Part shown: one piece after another, positions 1,209 to 25,461 of the stretch | Layout: the number at the start of each line of letters is the position of its first letter | Numbering within the stretch: position 1 is the stretch's first letter | NCBI RefSeq assembly: GCF_000400465.1 | Contig: NW_008806275.1 | Coordinates: 120,001-152,000, forward strand | Direction of reading: 5' to 3' | Origin: Wallemia ichthyophaga EXF-994 | Lineage: Eukaryota; Fungi; Basidiomycota | DNA: 32,000 nucleotides | Notes under the pieces: model-generated | The model's input: only the letters and a program-made list of their open reading frames with translations | Told to the model about the DNA's origin: nothing | The model's database searches: none | Translations under genes and position numbers: made by a program

Positions 1209-3700
1209 TCACCGACAATGCTCAGCGTCTCCGGACGGATTGAGAAACCAGATCGGTACTATGACCAGAATCCAAGGTAGTGCCAAATAGGCGAAAAATG
1301 CAGAGATACTAGTACCTGCGTCCAATGCAGCACTTAGTATAAAATTGTTTGCATACCACGTTGGATATTTCCTCCTAACTACATACTGTGATATATATCC
1401 TACGATAAGCAATGACACTATCACGTTTGCAGGCATTTGAGGCACCAAATTTGCTCCAAACAATATCAGGGGAAATGATATATGCTTGAATCCAAGCCTT
1501 GGATAGCGCTTATGAACTGCCCACGTCAATATTGGCAATATCAATCCCAATATAAACCCGCTTATCAGTAATACCTTGTACTTCCCCACAAAAAATCTTG
1601 CAGGTCCTACCAATCCCCAAATAACTGATGCAGAGAACATTATACGCGGTGATCTTCCTGTGTATTGACCTGTCGGATCAACTAGAGTACCGTCGAGGTA
1701 TGGTCGCTTGGTATCAATGACATTTTGTAGAACAACAAAATTCACAATTGCTCCAATTGCTGTGCCGATATATTGACATATAAATACATCCTTTTGAGGA
1801 CAATGAATCATCATCCCTAGCTTGGAGTCCTCAATCAGATCCAATGATTGAGACAGAGAATTGTACGCGAATGTTTTGAAGACGGCGTTAGCCACTGGCT
1901 TACCCGGCATTATATAACCTATCACTAGCTCTGAAAGTACGTTCAATCCAATGCTCTGACCGCTAACAGCTCTAATAATACCAAGTGGTATCAAGCACAC
2001 GGCTGCCATTAGCACTGATAGCGACAAGGCCCAGAATGGTAACTGAATGATAGGTTGGGCGCATGCGATAGCAGCGACGACGAATGTGATAACGAAAGTA
2101 GATATGTAGTATGATTTTGGTACTGATTGTGCCACCTCCTCTTGACTGGTTTTTTCCTTTCTCGCTGATAAGAGAGAAGCCTTGATATCTCCCGAATACC
2201 ACAAGATAACGTGAACAATTGTAGCTGTGAATGTTGCGAATGAGCACAAGTAGAATACACTAAAGTATGGTGTCAGAAGTAATGGTTTTTGCTGATCCCA
2301 GCTATTCAAATCGAGCTTTAGATCAGGTGTCAATACACCTTGAACATCGAACGCTTGGTGATTCTTCGTAAATAGCCCGGTCGACATTGGCAGGTCGAAT
2401 GAGAGGGCGTTCCAAAAATCTGTAAAATATATCAACGGTCCGACTATCCACACCATTCCCACCAGACCAGCGCACATGTTGAACAGTGCATCAGGGGGTG
2501 TGTAGAGAGGGCCCAAGGATGACAATGCAGACCAATCAAGACTAAAATCGAGCATTCCAAAACCCTGATAGCCACTACCAAGCGTGCGCATAACCCAGTT
2601 GTTGGAAAAATAGCATAAAAATGCGATGCTCGTTAGTGTTGGTGCGAAAAGGGAAGGAAGAAGCTGGTATAATATGACCTGAAGCTATTTCAGCAATTTG
2701 GTAGATATCCCAAAGTGAAAGACTAACTGCAACGAAGGAAACGATGAAAAATTTAAGTTTCTTGTCTACCTTTGACCTCTTGAGTTGATTGGTTTCATGA
2801 AGCGTGGTCAATACGCTGATAGTGGGTAGGTTGGCTGGATATACCATCTATGCAATACACGTTAGGCGTGAATGGTGAATATGATCAAGACTTACATTGA
2901 GTGGTTTGACCAAGATGTTGTATCCCAAACCGGCAAACGAGTATCCAATGAATTGGGATGTCAAAATGAGGGCAACAGCGACCCAGGTCGGGAAGTCGAC
3001 TTTAAAGTAGAGTGTGCAGATAGCCAAAACATCAGAAGCATAAGCAGCAGTCCCGCTAAAATACTTGTTAGTAAAACAATAAGCTAGTCATACACCTTTT
3101 CCCACCCGCTAGTTGCTAAAATGCTTATTAAACAATGCTCCTTGATGTTGAAGGTGCCAGGATTAAGGTTGATACCGAGGAAACGGCGGTGCGGCATCGA
3201 CTTTTCCATCAGTTTTCCAACGGGATAAGAGCTGAGTAGAACAATGAAGGGGTTCCATTGAGGTGCATTGTCCTGACTGTGTCAGCCACGGGAGAGAAAA
3301 GTTAAACACGGTCGTACCTGGAGAATGCTGTGAGCAAGCGTATATACATGCACTCACACCCACCTTAAAGTAAAATAGCTGCGAGAACGCCGCCCTAACA
3401 TCCCAATCAGCTGGAACCGGAATAAGATCGGATGACGCACCCAAGACTAACAAAGACGGAGCCAATGACGATGACTCTAATTGTGAGTGTAGGGAGTGAA
3501 GGATCATCAGATTCTGGTACGATTGCTGTTACAGCGTCGATAATCGAGCTGTGCCTCGAGCGAGCTCGTTGGCCATCCTTAGGCAACTGTACACGCTCAG
3601 AACCAGCCAGCGGTTCCAATTCAAAGTGATCAAAATCATTGCCACGGTCATCACCCTCGTTATCGCTCTCACTGTCATTCGCTAGCCTGTCATATCTCAT
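1209..3700 (-). CDS. OPT-family oligopeptide transporter, multi-exon
   Basis: The motifs SDDPSLPTLTIRV, NPGTFNIKEH, KLG..H.P, LIEDSKLG and SAALDAGT are present with many hydrophobic segments. The exons in 2591-3700 can be joined in frame. Confidence 0.92.
3273..3363 (-). other. 91-nt compound intron in the OPT gene made of two complete intron-like units (46 nt and 45 nt)
   Basis: On the minus strand the sequence is AAG|GTGGGT GTGAGT...GCTCAC...CTCCAG|GTACGA...GCTGAC ACAGTCAG|GAC AAT. Removing all 91 nt restores the frame FYFK-DNAPQW...NPGTFNIKEH. Confidence 0.65.
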
Positions 3701-4692: not shown

Positions 4693-7600
4693 TCAACTAG
4701 CTGATGGTGGTGGTGTAGCTTGCCCAGCGGGAATATCATCGAAAATTCTGAGTATTTGAGACTTGGGTGCTTTGCGCAAAACAAAGTCATACAATCCTGG
4801 TCGCAGCGTCGGTTGCTTTTTGACTAAATCCTTGAGCGTATCTTGAGGCAACTGGAGCAAAGCGCCGAAAGATGCAGGTGCTATTACTTTTGCACAGCGT
4901 ACGAATCCCTCCCACATTACAGGCATCAGCCAGATCTTCCTTGTTATCAACCTTGAGAACAAGTTTGTCGATACAAATGGCACGAGTGTTTTATATGTCG
5001 TAACTGCTTGTATCACAGTGCGCATGAAGAGCTTAGGTAGTACCTTGACTTCAGACATTGATTGCATGAAAATTGCCAAAACATCTGATCTAAATATGTC
5101 TGTGAGCGAGAAACAAATAGCAATTGCTTGAGTGTTTTGTTAGATTTACGAGTCGCAACGTGAACGGAATACCCACCAATTATAGTCTCCTTCAGACCGA
5201 TCTCAGTCTCACGCTCATGAAGTATTGTCAGCAGCTCAGCCGGTGTTATCTTATCTGGCTTATCCTTATCGACACGGACGACGTTGGTATTCACACTACC
5301 GAATGATTGAGGAGGTTCCACAACGGAGCTAAAGACAGTCCTGATGAGTTGCTTATTTTCCTCGCTCTTGAGAAGTTTAACGATGCGGGGTAATTCAGCA
5401 ATAATTTCATCCTTGAGGAGTTGTTAACCTTGCTATATTCTCAGTAAAACACTTACCTTTGAAAGCTCCTGCAAAATGGGTATGACGAAGCGCGGATCAA
5501 TTTTACCTTCACGTTCAGCGCTCAACTCTCTTATAAACTTAACGAGCTCAGCACTAGGTTTCTCTTTGCCAAAGTCAGTCAACACGTTCAAGATGCGTAG
5601 TGCTAATGGCTCAGAATCCTGATCGAAAGTTTTCAAAATAACCAACAGATTCTGATTCGAAGAACCCAATCCTCTGATCATAGGTGTGAGCGCTTTTTCG
5701 AACGAATCTTTAAGTTCTGGAGATAGTCTCGTGTAAACAATAAAAATATCTTTAAGAATTTCCGTTTGTCTCAAACACAACGAGAAGACTAATTCTGATC
5801 TCTCCAAAATCCTTGTGTCGATGGCAGCAGCGCGCTCTTTGGGAGATAATGTTACTCCCTCTTCATGGCTCTCTTTCTGAGAATTCTCTGACGCACCACC
5901 GTCTTGCTTCATAGGCTGATCATCATTATCCAGCTTTACGTCTGCCTCTTGATTAATTCCAAAATCAGTTCGCGTACCATCTTCTTCTTTCTTCACGTCG
6001 AGACTCGAAAGGAAAGTTTGCTGGTCCTGATACAAGCTGTGAAGAGATTTCAAGGCATGATCGAGAACAATAGGCGTGAGCTTCTCGTTATCCGGAACCC
6101 ACTTCCTGACAGAGTTGACAGCCGCTCGACGCGTTTTCAAATCAGGATGCACGGCGAGCGTGAGCAGTATCTCAAGTGAAGCCTGTCGCACCGGCAAGCG
6201 CATCGCGACTAGTTCCCTGAGTATAATAAATCCCACTGGGGCCTTCAAACTCTCACTATCTAAGCAAATCTTATGCACTTTATTCAAAGAATCCTGACTA
6301 ATGATTGGCAAATCCATCACAAATTTGACGAAAGCCGCGCTTGTTATATTGGAATTATTGTTCGATAATTGCGTAATCTGACGATCAATAATATGCGACA
6401 GTAACTCATTGTATCCATCCAGACTCGCATTCTCTTCTGTATCTTTGAGCAAGGTATAATTGAACCACTCTTCATTGAGCCAGAGAATAGCAATGTTGTA
6501 TCGTCTGTCGAAGTCCATACTGATAAAATCTATTAATGTCTCCCGAGCGCGTTTCTCTAATTGTAACTGCTCGTCTTGGATATGGTTTCCAACGTACGAC
6601 AGACCGCGAGTGAGCAACCTTACTAAAACAACAGACCACAGATCCCTGCCTTGAAATTTTAACGTTGACTTGCGAATATCTTCATCTGCAGTCTCGGTAA
6701 GAGCACTGTGTGGGATAGATTTACATATCCTTCCGATAGCATTCCTGATCACGAGTAATCTATCTCTTTTATCGAGGTTGGTTGGATGTTGCACTTTTTG
6801 CATGGCGCTAAGCAGAGACTGAGCTTTTGATTTAACACCTTGCATTCTGGTGGCACCCTGTTCATTTTCGCTGTGATTCTGATTCTGACTCTGACTCTGG
6901 ATGGCTTGCTGTGCCTCTCCAAATGGCGCCACAGTGTCATTGAGGTTTCTATTAATCCCTTCCACATCATCTTCCAATTCGTCATCGTCTATATCTACCT
7001 TTAGCGGATCGATAGGCTTTTCGTCAACATCCATCCCATCTTGCGCAAATGGTTGCGATTGTGGCTCTAGTTGTCTAGATGGACCTGGCTGTGGACGAGA
7101 TGGTAATACATGGGTGGTGGATTGGGAACTCTCTTCCGTCTTGATTCTCTCTCTCGACTTATTTATTGCATTTTCAAGACTTTGTTTGCTGACTTTCTCA
7201 AGACTCTCTATAAGCCCATCAATGACACTCTCGAGTGGGAGCTTCGTCACGTCAATGTCCATCCTAGATGAGCTGTCAGCAAAGACTGAAGGCAAGTGGT
7301 CATTTGTACGCTGACGCTTAAGATCTAAAGATTTAAGACTTGGAGTTTCAGCCATTGCACGCTTCATAGCCTTCTTCCTCGATTGCTCATCCCTAGTAAG
7401 CTGCTCAATCCGCTGAGCTTGCTTCGACAGGGACTCCATAACGGTTGGTGTGCTGTTACCAGTGAGGCCAAGTTTAACGAGATGTTTGAGCACGCCATAG
7501 AGCAACTTATCGACAGATTTGAGCTGAGAAGGATTCGTGACCATAGTCTGGAGGGGTGCCGGAGTCCAAGTCGCGAGAGCTGGTGCGATTGCAGCTGCGT

Positions 7601-8234
7601 ACTGAGGCCGCTGTCTGGCCAAAACACCCAATATATTAATAGTCGCTGTAACGATGGATAGCTTTTGTGGGGTAAATATCAAAGTAAGGAGGGAGTGTAG
7701 TGTGCGAGTATTCTCACTCTCGAGGGCTCTTGTGTCGATGAAGGGGTGATTGCCAGCTATGAGAGATACGTTGACATCCCTCGACGATGTTCTGCCTTGT
7801 GGACGCGATTGGACGACGATGGACCGTTGGGCAAACTTGATAGCAGACAGACGTAGACTGAGTGGAGCGTGTTTCTGCTCAACCAAAGCAAATATCGCTG
7901 ATTTTACGCTTTGCAGCTTATTCCAGCCTTGTGGCTGCCCTTGATTAACCGCGCTGTGTGCAAGGTCAGAATCGGCCGTATTGAATCAACAGAACGCACG
8001 AGAATTTAAGAATATGATGGTATGCGGAGGCCAAGCAGAGAATAGCGTGCTGTCTGTGCAGAGGATCTACGCTCTCGTCGCGGAAGATGGTGATGAGTAC
8101 ATCGAGAGATTGGACAGCGACTGGAATTGGGTGAGATGAGGAGTATAATAGACGCAAACCCAACTTATTGGATCGAGTCCGCTATTATCCAGCGCCTGCT
8201 TGAGCGGTGGTAGCAATTCAGCTGGGTCGACCAT
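4693..8234 (-). CDS. PTA1: Symplekin/Pta1, scaffold of the mRNA 3'-end cleavage and polyadenylation complex
   Basis: The long helical ORF 5433-7886 joins C-terminal exons with symplekin-C motifs (ITPAELLTILH, LPKLFMRTVIQA, LITRKIW..PVMWEGFVRCA..IAPASFGALLQLP). The spliced start MVDPAELLPP is at 8234. Confidence 0.88.
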
Positions 8235-8295
8235 CAGTCGTCGTTGTCGCTGTTCAAGATGTATAAATAATTATTTATTATGTAATTTAAATTAT

Positions 8296-10219
8296 TTAGC
8301 CAGGCGTCGATGGCGACGAGAAGCCCTTATAGATGGGTGCTGCAGATAGCGGCATTTGAGCTTGACTGGAAGGCGGTGGATTAGAAGAATGCGTTTCGCG
8401 TGACTTGTTGCTTGAAATGTCTGTAAGCGTTATAATGAGCAAATATCATCCACAAGTCACCCAACTCACACCACGAAGGAGTCCATCCGCGTTCTCCATT
8501 TGGCTCTTTCACCACGTAGCACCAGTGGTTATGTTTCTTGTAAACCCTCAGCTTGTCGTCCTTGTGTAGCCCACATTCGTTGTGTGTGTTGGCAGTGTAT
8601 TTTATCAGCGCAGTGGCTGCGTAGCTGTTGCTGAGAATTTGCATCTGAGTGGCATCGTTGGATAGACTGGAGACCTCCAGCAAACACCCCGTAGGCACCC
8701 ATCCAACCTCATTCTTAGCCTGTCTGCGTACAACCCACCATCCTTTGGCTCGTTGCACTATCTCAAATTGATCACTGACATTTACGTCAAATTCATCTTC
8801 TCTATCCGCAGTGTATGGGTATATGGCTATAGCGTAGCCTTGTATCTCCTCACTGCTACAAATTTCAGCGAGTGGTTTACCATTCCGGAAGCTAGTAACG
8901 TTAGCGTTTGCACTGGATAGTGACGAGTGCGGCTGATTACTACTACTGGAGGGTGGAGTGAGGGTATTGTTAGCTTCGCGTCTAGATCGCTGCTTTTGCA
9001 AGGCTATAGATATAGGTGATCTGAAGGAAGTATAAGAATAATAACCATGAAAATTAAAACACCAACCTCAATTCCTTGATATGTCGGAGCATGAAGACGG
9101 GTTGCTGAGACTGTTCTTTTAGCTTCTGGAAGAGCTGCAGAGGACGCTCATCGTATGACAAGCAACGTTCAGTTTTACCATCTTTGAGGGGTGAGAATGA
9201 GAATGAGAGTCCAAGATAAGGAGCAGCCCCACTCACAGCAAATGAACAAGGCATACTTAGTCCAATCATCATCAATTTTGTATTTCTTGAGCGCAGCAGG
9301 GAGGACAGTCCAGCAGCTGTCATCGAGCTTAACTTTTACGTTTGATTTAGCTTTACCAGATCTAGCACGGGATAAATCACCAAGAGAAGCCTGCCTGAGA
9401 AGTCTGGTGGTGTCTTTCAAGTTATTAGAATCCCTGGTATCCTCGTTGTCGTCATCTTTGAGTGTCTCAGATATGTTTGAGGAAGCAGAGGTGGATGAAG
9501 TGTTTGGGGGAGCAGAGCTTGGTGCGGAAGTGGTAGCAGGGGAAACGGTGATAGTCTTTGGAGAAATTTCAAGTTCGGAATCGGGGGATTTGAGCAAGTC
9601 GTCGAGGTGCTTGGAAGGTTTCGAGGAACTATCAGACTTCAAACACATAAGCTCATCGTAAGTAGCTTCGAAGGACTTGAATAACCTCCTGTAATCAGAT
9701 TCCAGAGCGTTTAGTCTATCGTCGTGGACGGACACCTTGTTTATAAGGTTAGATTGGCTGTAAGATGAGGATTTAGATTGGTTTATGGTTTCAGCTAAGA
9801 ATTTGAGTGAGCAAATGTCTTGTTATCTGATAGACTGGAGACATACAAGGTGGTACATAGTGCTCTGGTTCAACAGAAATATCAAAAAAGAGCTTGAGAT
9901 GATAAATTTCACGTAGAATGTTAAGCCTGATTCCAACGGATATAATACCCAGATCCTTGAGTGCTTCATGGTCTAGCAGCGGGTGTTAGCGTGGAACACT
10001 AACGCAAGCAGCAGCTCACCCAAATGAACGAGGATTTCACCAGAAATCTCATTTTCTAGGGGAATTGAGATGATTATGATGATATAAAAGACACACACCT
10101 TTGAACATGTGCAGATGCTGTGGGTAATTGAGCTGCTGTAACCAACATCCGACATCAAAATCACTCCAATTAAGAATATTCTTATTCCTTAGATCTTCAT
10201 TGAGGTTTGGTGGTGTCAT
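8296..10219 (-). CDS. STE50: Ste50/Ubc2-type MAPK adaptor with SAM, Ras-association and two C-terminal SH3 domains
   Basis: The N-terminal SAM reads ILNWSDFDVGCWLQQLNY...NEISGEILVHL.HEALKDLGIISVGIRLNILREIY. The RA domain reads LPAALKKYKIDDDW..YALFIC..TERCLSYDERPLQLFQKLKE...PVFMLRHIK. Two SH3 domains follow (AIAIYPY...GWWVV...GWVP; ALIKY...GWTPSW). This is the layout of Ustilago Ubc2. Confidence 0.88.
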
Positions 10220-24026: not shown

Positions 24027-25461
24027 TAAACGCTGTTGAAAGTTCACAAAGAGGGCACCATGTTCGACTTTGTCGGGATAAATTAAATTAAATATAAATT
24101 ACAAAAAATGTTTCATATATTCCTCACGACGCAGGCGTTTTATCTGTTTATATGTTAGAATGCCCCTAAACATAATTGTAAACCCACTTGCTGGCCGAAC
24201 CCCCGAGCAACCCGCTTGGTGAAGCTCACAGCGCTCGTTTGTAATTGGATTAACGAATCTGCAAATGTTACATATCCATAATTCAGCAAATGGCTAAATA
24301 TGTTATTAGCCTCGCCGCACCCGCCACACCTCCTCACCATTTTCTGTAGTTGATTGACAGTATTTAATGACACAAATTAATAAAACAAAGAGATTGACAT
24401 GCTTTCATTTTTTATTTTATTCCTATCGGTCTCTCTCCCCTTTGCAACCTGGCCTGTGTGTATAGCTGTTAGCCTGGATAAGACACTGGCAACTTCACCC
24501 ACTTCAAACACCTCAAACACACTAAAGGTACCTCCATTCCACATCTGTCACATACCCAGATCCTGTGGCTTTCTTTCAGCGAGCGTAAACAGTTCTCCTG
24601 TTTCTTAGTTTCGCTTGTTTACTCAATGCCTCACCCACAAAAGTCATATTGAAAAAGTTGTGAAAACTTTGTAATCGCTGGAAAAGAGCGTTTAATACAC
24701 CTACATCTCTTATATACTCGCCCTTGATTGACCTCTTGAAATGTACTTGATAATCTCATGACTACTTTGCTTTTCTAATCACATTTGTGCACTTAATAGT
24801 TTCAGGTAACATTGACCAACGCGTACAAATACGCGTAGATTCTTTCCTTTTGTCTCATTTCCAAACCCCTACACACTCCCTCTAAATTCACGCTTTCTTT
24901 TTAACAATACATAATCTGGTTACATCCCAACACCTTTACTCCCCCCCATTATCAACTCTCTCTTCTCTTGTCACACCTGTCAAACTCATGTCAGCACCCC
25001 CGCTTGATGAAAGCCTCCGAACTGACGCACATGTTACAAGTTTGGTAAACTATCGGTATAAGATACTTGCAGCTACTGCACTTCCAACATCCTATGGCTG
25101 CTGATCTGTCTTTGTTCATTGCAATTGTAGTACTTGAAGTTTTGACGTTAAATTATCAGTCTAGATTAATAGCTGCAGATGAGAATGTAAATCTCCAACC
25201 TGTCATTCTAGACCTGTTCTCTAATAACTCCAGAATCTCCTGCTCACGTGGTTTTTCAATCGTTCCGCTTATTCATTCATGCATGACATTCCAATTTGCA
25301 AATCATTCGCAAATGTTTCTTCATCATATCACATCCGAATTCTCATTAACCCTCAACAATCACATCTTAATATCCTCACTTGTCATCACACTGTCACTGC
25401 CATTGTCACCGCCTCATCGTTTCACAAACAATATGTATTGATGTAATTGGTATAATACATT

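Follow-up and report, generated by a model that had tools for sequence, protein, structure and literature searches.

Animal counterparts of the zero-nucleotide exon, at which the 3' splice site of one intron directly abuts the next intron's 5' splice site, are found in Drosophila and vertebrates as ratchet points, which lie in introns of kilobases. Among fungi, spliceosome profiling demonstrated a zero-nucleotide exon in the 375-nucleotide (nt) intron of C. neoformans BOT1 (CNAG_07884), which is split into 210 and 165 nt (Burke et al., bioRxiv 10.1101/224170), and another in the 336-nt intron of S. pombe SPNCRNA.445, with sites conserved in sister species (Chen et al., bioRxiv 10.1101/226894). 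In this study, intron 2 of an OPT oligopeptide transporter gene of the extremely halophilic basidiomycete Wallemia ichthyophaga EXF-994 was analyzed, which lies on the minus strand of a 32,000-nt stretch of contig NW_008806275.1 (positions 120,001 to 152,000, hereafter the window). Intron 2 is 91 nt long, and its sequence suggests that it is probably composed of two abutting U2-type introns of canonical size (46 and 45 nt), which meet at a zero-nucleotide exon (recursive splice site) and are removed in two steps.

Like the introns of BOT1 and SPNCRNA.445, OPT intron 2 is annotated as a single intron, contains a 3' splice site that abuts a 5' splice site, can be divided into two complete introns, and would yield the same mRNA if it were removed in one step. 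The likeness to SPNCRNA.445 includes the conservation, in related species, of the splice-site sequences around the zero-length exon. In contrast, the introns of BOT1 and SPNCRNA.445 are long and their intermediates were found bound to the spliceosome, whereas OPT intron 2 is 91–103 nt in length in the lineages compared and has halves of modal intron length. We regard the locus as a well-supported candidate for a zero-nucleotide exon, which is notable for its small size, its modal-length halves, its genus-wide conservation, and the cluster of introns and micro-exons to which its position belongs.

A stwintron is defined by an internal intron that interrupts a splice motif of an external intron (PMC8469720, PMC7138796), and the published stwintrons that were found are all from Ascomycota. 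Stwintrons sensu stricto of the [D1,2] and [D5,6] types from Pezizomycotina (PMC9024468, PMC5639578, PMC6616335) resemble OPT intron 2 in that one intron position is shared by two ordinary-sized U2 introns, for which removal one after the other is predicted. They differ in that a donor, branch, or acceptor motif of the outer intron is interrupted, whereas each of the OPT units is independent of the prior removal of the other. An initial annotation, made from the letters of the window, had mentioned the stwintrons of filamentous ascomycetes; in its strict sense the term does not apply to this locus, because the outer GTGGGT donor, the terminal GCTGAC branch motif, and the terminal CAG acceptor are all uninterrupted and the units merely abut.

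The complex introns of Lipomyces designated [D6,7] and [D7,8], or 'stwintrons sensu lato', share with OPT intron 2 the presence of two canonical U2 units and the possibility of removal in either one or two steps (Sci Rep 2020, PMC7138796). Their abutting 5' donor hexamers and internal acceptor located halfway along the intron have counterparts in the W. ichthyophaga sequence (GTGGGT/GTGAGT...CAG; slashes mark splice sites or unit boundaries throughout), in which the second donor is putative. Removal of the Lipomyces complex introns starts with the smallest intron unit available (PMC7138796), and their nested units are removed from the inside out, whereas the layout conserved in Wallemia is end-to-end and abutting donors occur in only one Wallemia species. 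Furthermore, Lipomyces is an ascomycete yeast, whereas Wallemia is a basidiomycete.

Anatomy and conservation of OPT intron 2

The gene and the elements of its second intron are as follows.

1209 to 3700, minus strand: OPT oligopeptide transporter gene, with exons at 3700-3441, 3394-3364, 3272-3106, 3055-2896, 2847-2728, and 2678-1209
3273 to 3363, minus strand: intron 2, the 91-nt intervening sequence between FYFK and DNAPQW
3318 to 3363, minus strand: unit A, 46 nt, with donor GTGGGT (3363-3358), branch motif GCTCAC (3335-3330), and acceptor CAG (3320-3318)
3273 to 3317, minus strand: unit B, 45 nt, with donor GTACGA (3317-3312), branch motif GCTGAC (3286-3281), and acceptor CAG (3275-3273)
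3312 to 3320, minus strand: candidate zero-length-exon junction CAG/GTACGA, at which the internal acceptor directly abuts the internal donor
3352 to 3357, minus strand: second donor-like hexamer GTGAGT, which abuts the outer donor and is specific to W. ichthyophaga

The spliced OPT product is 735 amino acids in length and matched Pfam PF03169 (OPT) at 3.3e-128 over profile positions 2-622 of 623. An exact-sequence look-up found it to be identical to W. ichthyophaga EXF-994 'Oligopeptide transporter 5' (EOR03944.1/XP_009266161.1), which bears out the initial proposal that 91 nt must be removed between FYFK and DNAPQW. This removal joins TTT TAC TTT AAG to GAC AAT GCA CCT in frame. On the minus strand, the region reads TTTTACTTTAAG / GTGGGTGTGAGTGCATGTATATACGCTTGCTCACAGCATTCTCCAG / GTACGACCGTGTTTAACTTTTCTCTCCCGTGGCTGACACAGTCAG / GACAATGCACCT, in the order of exon end, unit A, unit B, and exon start. 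Every motif of the two full signal sets that the initial annotation had described as meeting at CAG/GTACGA was found where it had been placed. The distance from the branch A to the AG is 13 nt in unit A and 9 nt in unit B.

Lengths of 45-58 nt were obtained for approximately 20 high-confidence introns of the window, and the other OPT introns of W. ichthyophaga are 46, 50, 48, and 49 nt, so that intron 2, previously described as about twice the usual length, measures approximately 1.9 times the norm. This census was based only on a filtered list of introns, because earlier permissive scans gave mostly false positives. The letters of the two units that might appear unusual, namely the internal donor's C at +4 and A at +6 as well as the CTCAC branch motif, recur among the confident introns of the window, in which GTGCGT was used as a donor three times, GTGGGA, GTAAGA, and GTGAGA were also seen, and CTCAC served as the branch motif three times. 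As a separate observation, one-step splicing from the second and stronger donor-like hexamer (3352-3357) to the terminal acceptor (3273), which would remove 85 nt, would leave GTGGGT within the mRNA and give a possible in-frame isoform with two additional amino acids (Val-Gly) in W. ichthyophaga only.

Intron 2 was compared among four lineages, which included all Wallemia in the protein clusters: W. ichthyophaga itself (the window and contigs L003 and L004, which are identical to the window in intron 2); L005, a close relative from Logan run SRR25399871; L001 and L002, of a W. mellicola-type lineage; and L006 (SRR33769985), a second lineage of the W. mellicola clade. Default MAFFT alignment put the central junction in the wrong place between the clades; for the comparison of the units, the sequences were anchored at AG/GT. 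The two parts of intron 2 and its central junction in each lineage are as follows.

W. ichthyophaga: 46+45 nt, CCAG/GTACGA
L005: 52+46 nt, CTAG/GTGCGA
L001: 51+52 nt, CTAG/GTTCGT
L006: 51+52 nt, CTAG/GTTCGT

The comparison of the internal signals among orthologues had been set beforehand as a check, and its outcome was positive. The central YAG/GTNCG and the division into approximately 50+50 nt are kept in all four lineages, with a YTRAY branch motif located 11-13 nt upstream of the internal AG (CTCAC in W. ichthyophaga, CTGAC in L005, and TTAAT in both L001 and L006), and unit B ends in GCTGAY followed by YAG in every lineage. These data show the anatomy of intron 2, the conservation of this anatomy, and a constraint on intron length in Wallemia. 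The OPT exon lengths of 31, 167, 160, and 120 nt are likewise identical in the four lineages.

The sequences surrounding these signals have diverged extensively. Third-codon-position identity is 0.41-0.43 between the clades, 0.59 between W. ichthyophaga and L005, and 0.82 between L001 and L006. Intron identity between the two deep clades is 0.47-0.60, equal to that of shuffled sequences (0.48 +/- 0.04). Introns 1, 3, 4, and 5 are 44-50 nt in length in every lineage, and between the clades they have kept only the donor, the branch motif, and the AG, with overall identity at the shuffled level. Passive retention of the internal signals of intron 2 is unlikely in view of this third-position and intron divergence. 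We conclude from the comparison that purifying selection acts on the internal acceptor and donor and on the branch motif upstream of them.

The frequency with which such a pattern could arise by chance was estimated by shuffling intron interiors, and a valid central split was defined as HAG/GTNNG with a branch motif 7-22 nt upstream and with both halves 38-66 nt in length. Such splits appeared in 0.2-0.6% of trials per lineage. The W. ichthyophaga genome is reported to contain 11,786 introns with a mean length of 61 nt (PMC3849046), and this rate applied to approximately 11,800 introns (PMC3849046) leads to the expectation of a few chance cases genome-wide. The pattern in a single genome is only weakly above chance, and it is the conservation in four lineages that lifts it above chance: given that the intron was chosen for its feature in W. 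ichthyophaga, the probability of its occurrence in the other clade without selection is on the order of 10^-3. In scans for tandem units on both strands, the intron 2 site was the sole match in each of the L001, L005, and L006 loci (approximately 33 kb), and in the window it was accompanied by one false positive (25030-24934, minus strand), through which a small zinc-finger open reading frame (ORF) reads.

One further conserved block was identified in unit B by hand-anchored comparison.

3301 to 3310, minus strand: conserved block CGTGTTTAAC, which reads CGTGTTTTAC in the other three lineages

This block, CGTGTTTWAC, is located 8-13 nt 3' of the internal donor in all four lineages (approximately 3546-3555 in L005, 5410-5419 in L001, and 3410-3419 in L006), and the intron around it has diverged to background. 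Neither the donor nor the main branch site nor the acceptor accounts for it, and it could be a distal branch site (TTAAC/TTTAC) or a protein-binding site. No stable or conserved RNA structure was detected in the intron (folding z-scores of -1.1 to +1.0), and no Rfam family matched it at E <= 1; on these two results, a hosted small or structured RNA does not account for the conservation.

Possible pathways for the removal of intron 2

The introns of Wallemia are approximately 44-58 nt in length, and their splice sites are presumably paired across the intron. Because the introns are this short and uniform, each donor would be expected to select the closest compatible branch site and acceptor, as was observed for the complex introns of Lipomyces (PMC7138796): GCTCAC...CAG for the outer donor GTGGGT, and GCTGAC...CAG for the internal donor GTACGA. 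If unit A were removed first, AAG would be joined to GTACGA and a donor would be regenerated (TTTACTTTAAG/GTACGACCG), after which unit B would be removed. If unit B were removed first, unit A would stay intact (CATTCTCCAG/GACAATGCA) and the final mRNA would be the same. From this arrangement we infer both the in vivo use of the internal sites and the order of that use. Either order of two-step removal and removal in one step all yield the reference mRNA, and the pathway cannot be proven from the sequence for this reason.

Several points weigh against two-step removal. The four lineages provide no more than some two to three comparisons that are independent. In every lineage, C at +4 makes the internal donor sub-consensus. 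The outer donor, the terminal branch site, and the terminal acceptor are all intact, so that removal of the 91 nt in one step, with the same mRNA as product, is mechanically possible, and, to judge from the published mean length of 61 nt (PMC3849046), Wallemia seems to tolerate some longer introns. The CGTGTTTWAC block represents a constraint beyond the six splice signals, and other causes of conservation are possible as a consequence. With regard to OPT transcripts, no Logan-derived ORF of a spliced or half-spliced form was present in the protein clusters. When the spliced N-terminal region was used in a second protein search, the only matches were a Syncephalis OPT and an ORF from an unrelated lineage, which has no intron at the site.

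An ordinary single intron of 91 nt, removed in one reaction from GTGGGT to GCTGAC...CAG, is possible, although we consider it rather unlikely. The internal motifs would then not be splice sites and would be present by chance or would owe their conservation to some other cause, such as a role as an intronic splicing enhancer bound by U1 or U2AF. The complete and canonical outer signals are consistent with this explanation, as are the reference annotations of EXF-994 and W. mellicola CBS 633.66, which both join FYFK/DNAPQW, the constraint on the CGTGTTTWAC block, which lies inside the intron and is not a splice site, and the expectation that the single-genome pattern occurs a few times by chance. 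However, an entire second set of signals is co-conserved with correct spacing, two modal-length halves are retained in four lineages at saturating divergence, and unused decoys that compete with the true sites should be lost rather than kept. Retention of the layout in four lineages argues for removal in two steps.

The initial annotation had proposed two routes to the same mRNA, and they fared differently. The abutting layout is found in all four lineages. The nested route, which corresponds to a '[D6,7] stwintron sensu lato', would begin with a 40-nt inner intron from GTGAGT (3357) to the internal CAG (3318), followed by a 51-nt outer intron in which GTGGGT is fused to unit B. The abutting GTGGGT/GTGAGT hexamers that it needs are present in W. 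ichthyophaga, the same architecture was experimentally demonstrated in Lipomyces starkeyi (PMC7138796), and the donor hexamer most often seen in the window's confident introns is GTGAGT. Nevertheless, L005, L001, and L006 lack the second donor, which leaves the conserved layout unexplained, and 40 nt is shorter than any confident Wallemia intron examined here (minimum of 44-45 nt). As an account of the locus this route is highly improbable, and it may be a side path in W. ichthyophaga.

A regulatory role was also considered, in which use of a single unit would lead to a frameshift or stop and the intron would act as a nonsense-mediated decay switch that lowers transporter output, with productive removal in one or two steps. 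In all four lineages, the frame is disrupted if one of the units is kept (units of 46/45, 52/46, and 51/52 nt): in W. ichthyophaga, the mRNA with unit B alone would encode FYFK-VRPCLTFLSRG before a stop after 11 codons, and that with unit A alone is frameshifted. Moreover, intron retention is reported as the main mode of alternative splicing in W. ichthyophaga, with half of the events found at only one of the limiting salinities (PMC3849046). These data are consistent with unproductive splicing, yet any retained ordinary intron would act alike and the double layout is unnecessary for it; we consider this proposal very unlikely to be the explanation.

If the internal sites are used, OPT intron 2 would be the shortest recursively spliced sequence among the published cases compared here and among the very few fungal cases, with retention across a genus. 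Its splicing would then indicate that recursive splicing is not confined to very long introns and that it could stem from a strict upper limit on intron length where the genome is compact.

Introns and micro-exons at the corresponding site in other fungi

The initial annotation had also raised the possibility that the two units are the relic of a lost micro-exon. In an alignment with eight other fungal OPTs, the K/D junction is gap-free, so that no residues were lost there. The candidate micro-exons between the units, CATTCTCCAG (10 nt) and GTACGACC (8 nt), break the frame, an 18-nt option would shorten the introns to 36-37 nt and place the branch motif against the AG, and the counterparts in other lineages are 8, 12, and 13 nt with inconsistent frames. 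Judged by these reading frames, an in-frame micro-exon is impossible in all four Wallemia lineages. The other part of the proposal found some support in other basidiomycetes, which have micro-exons of 13 and 7 nt at the same spot.

In the OPT gene of Atractiella rhizophila (L009, 752-875), introns of 55 and 56 nt flank a 13-nt micro-exon (TTC A/gt...ag/AGTCAAACGCCCC/gt...ag/G TCA), and in that of Naganishia albida (L012, approximately 703-889), three introns are separated by micro-exons of 13 nt (GTGTTCTACTTCA) and 7 nt (AATCCAA). Common to the two species is an intron that lies 2 nt upstream of the Wallemia junction and interrupts the Lys codon in phase 1. The Phaffia OPT gene has one intron located 7 nt upstream, in the Tyr codon, and no intron was present at the FYFK-SNAP site in the OPT orthologues of Kwoniella, Sporobolomyces, Gigaspora, and one further fungus. 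Atractiella and Naganishia are similar to Wallemia in that two or three introns of approximately 50-70 nt are packed into the same codons (FYFK-SNAP) of the same gene. They are different in that coding micro-exons separate their introns, which are in phase 1 of Lys and phase 2 of Asn or Pro, whereas in Wallemia both units are at a single phase-0 site and the flanking exons encode all residues.

Closely packed introns are thus frequent in this short stretch, the presence of two introns at this position is a natural state for the OPT gene, and the zero spacing in Wallemia could be regarded as the limiting case of closely packed introns. The arrangement may have originated either from two introns through shifts in position or from the insertion of one unit at the AAG/GT boundary of the other. 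A bolder proposal is that, with Wallemia introns confined to approximately 45-58 nt, the double-length intron can be removed only piecewise, with an obligatory zero-nucleotide exon that is the endpoint of a micro-exon shrinking across basidiomycete orthologues (13 to 7 to 0 nt) as intron positions shifted, and that further double-length introns of Wallemia have this construction and form a genome-wide class of end-to-end twin introns; this we consider distinctly unlikely. Together with the 13- and 7-nt micro-exons, the locus provides a series for studying the evolution of neighbouring introns and micro-exons, position shifts of 1-2 bases, and complex introns outside Ascomycota.

Offsets in intron position were observed at two sites. 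Intron 1 (3395-3440 in the window, 672-721 in L009) interrupts a Gly codon, with phase 2 in Wallemia but phase 1 in Atractiella, and intron 2 (3363 in the window, 752 in L009, and approximately 770 in L012) follows Lys in phase 0 in Wallemia and is in phase 1 of Lys in Atractiella and Naganishia. These 1-2 nt offsets between homologous introns of Wallemia and other basidiomycetes look like intron sliding.

Exon 2, gene models, and neighbouring sequences

The short exon that precedes intron 2, and the acceptor used in some database models of the gene, are as follows.

3364 to 3394, minus strand: exon 2, 31 nt, encoding (G)AAFSQLFYFK
3277 to 3280, minus strand: ACAG, alternative acceptor of 726-amino-acid NCBI models, only 5 nt from the branch A

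Eight NCBI models of 726 amino acids (20 accessions) from other W. ichthyophaga strains (P0001, P0054-P0059), with locus tags beginning with E3P, skip exon 2 and join exon 1 to the acceptor at 3277, which gives an intron of 164 nt (3277-3440, minus strand). Exon 2 is 31 nt in all four lineages with synonymous differences only, aligns with SQLFYFK, a motif conserved among other fungal OPTs, and is contained in the W. mellicola reference protein. Because of this conservation of length and encoded residues, the motif, and the inclusion in W. mellicola, the 726-amino-acid model is wrong and looks like a systematic misannotation. In practical terms, the locus misleads gene predictors, which skip a 31-nt exon located beside the double-length intron.

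Two scans of metagenome contigs from the Joint Genome Institute for additional relatives of this locus found none.

Two further features of the window are recorded here. Upstream of the PH-domain gene, an NCBI gene (1-2008 in L003 and L004, approximately 5436-9900 on the minus strand of the window) is represented in other strains by one product of approximately 1,560-1,600 amino acids, in which SAM, RA, and SH3 domains occur together with symplekin domains. In W. mellicola-type contigs, the SH3 part and the symplekin part are separate gene calls, and the combined product may be a fused gene model. At 24934-25117 on the minus strand, the small ORF noted above encodes a zinc-finger-like sequence (CWKCSSC...CNMC) and lies in a low-GC stretch, with 38-41% G+C over 24-28 kb and a GC skew of -0.31 at 24-25 kb.

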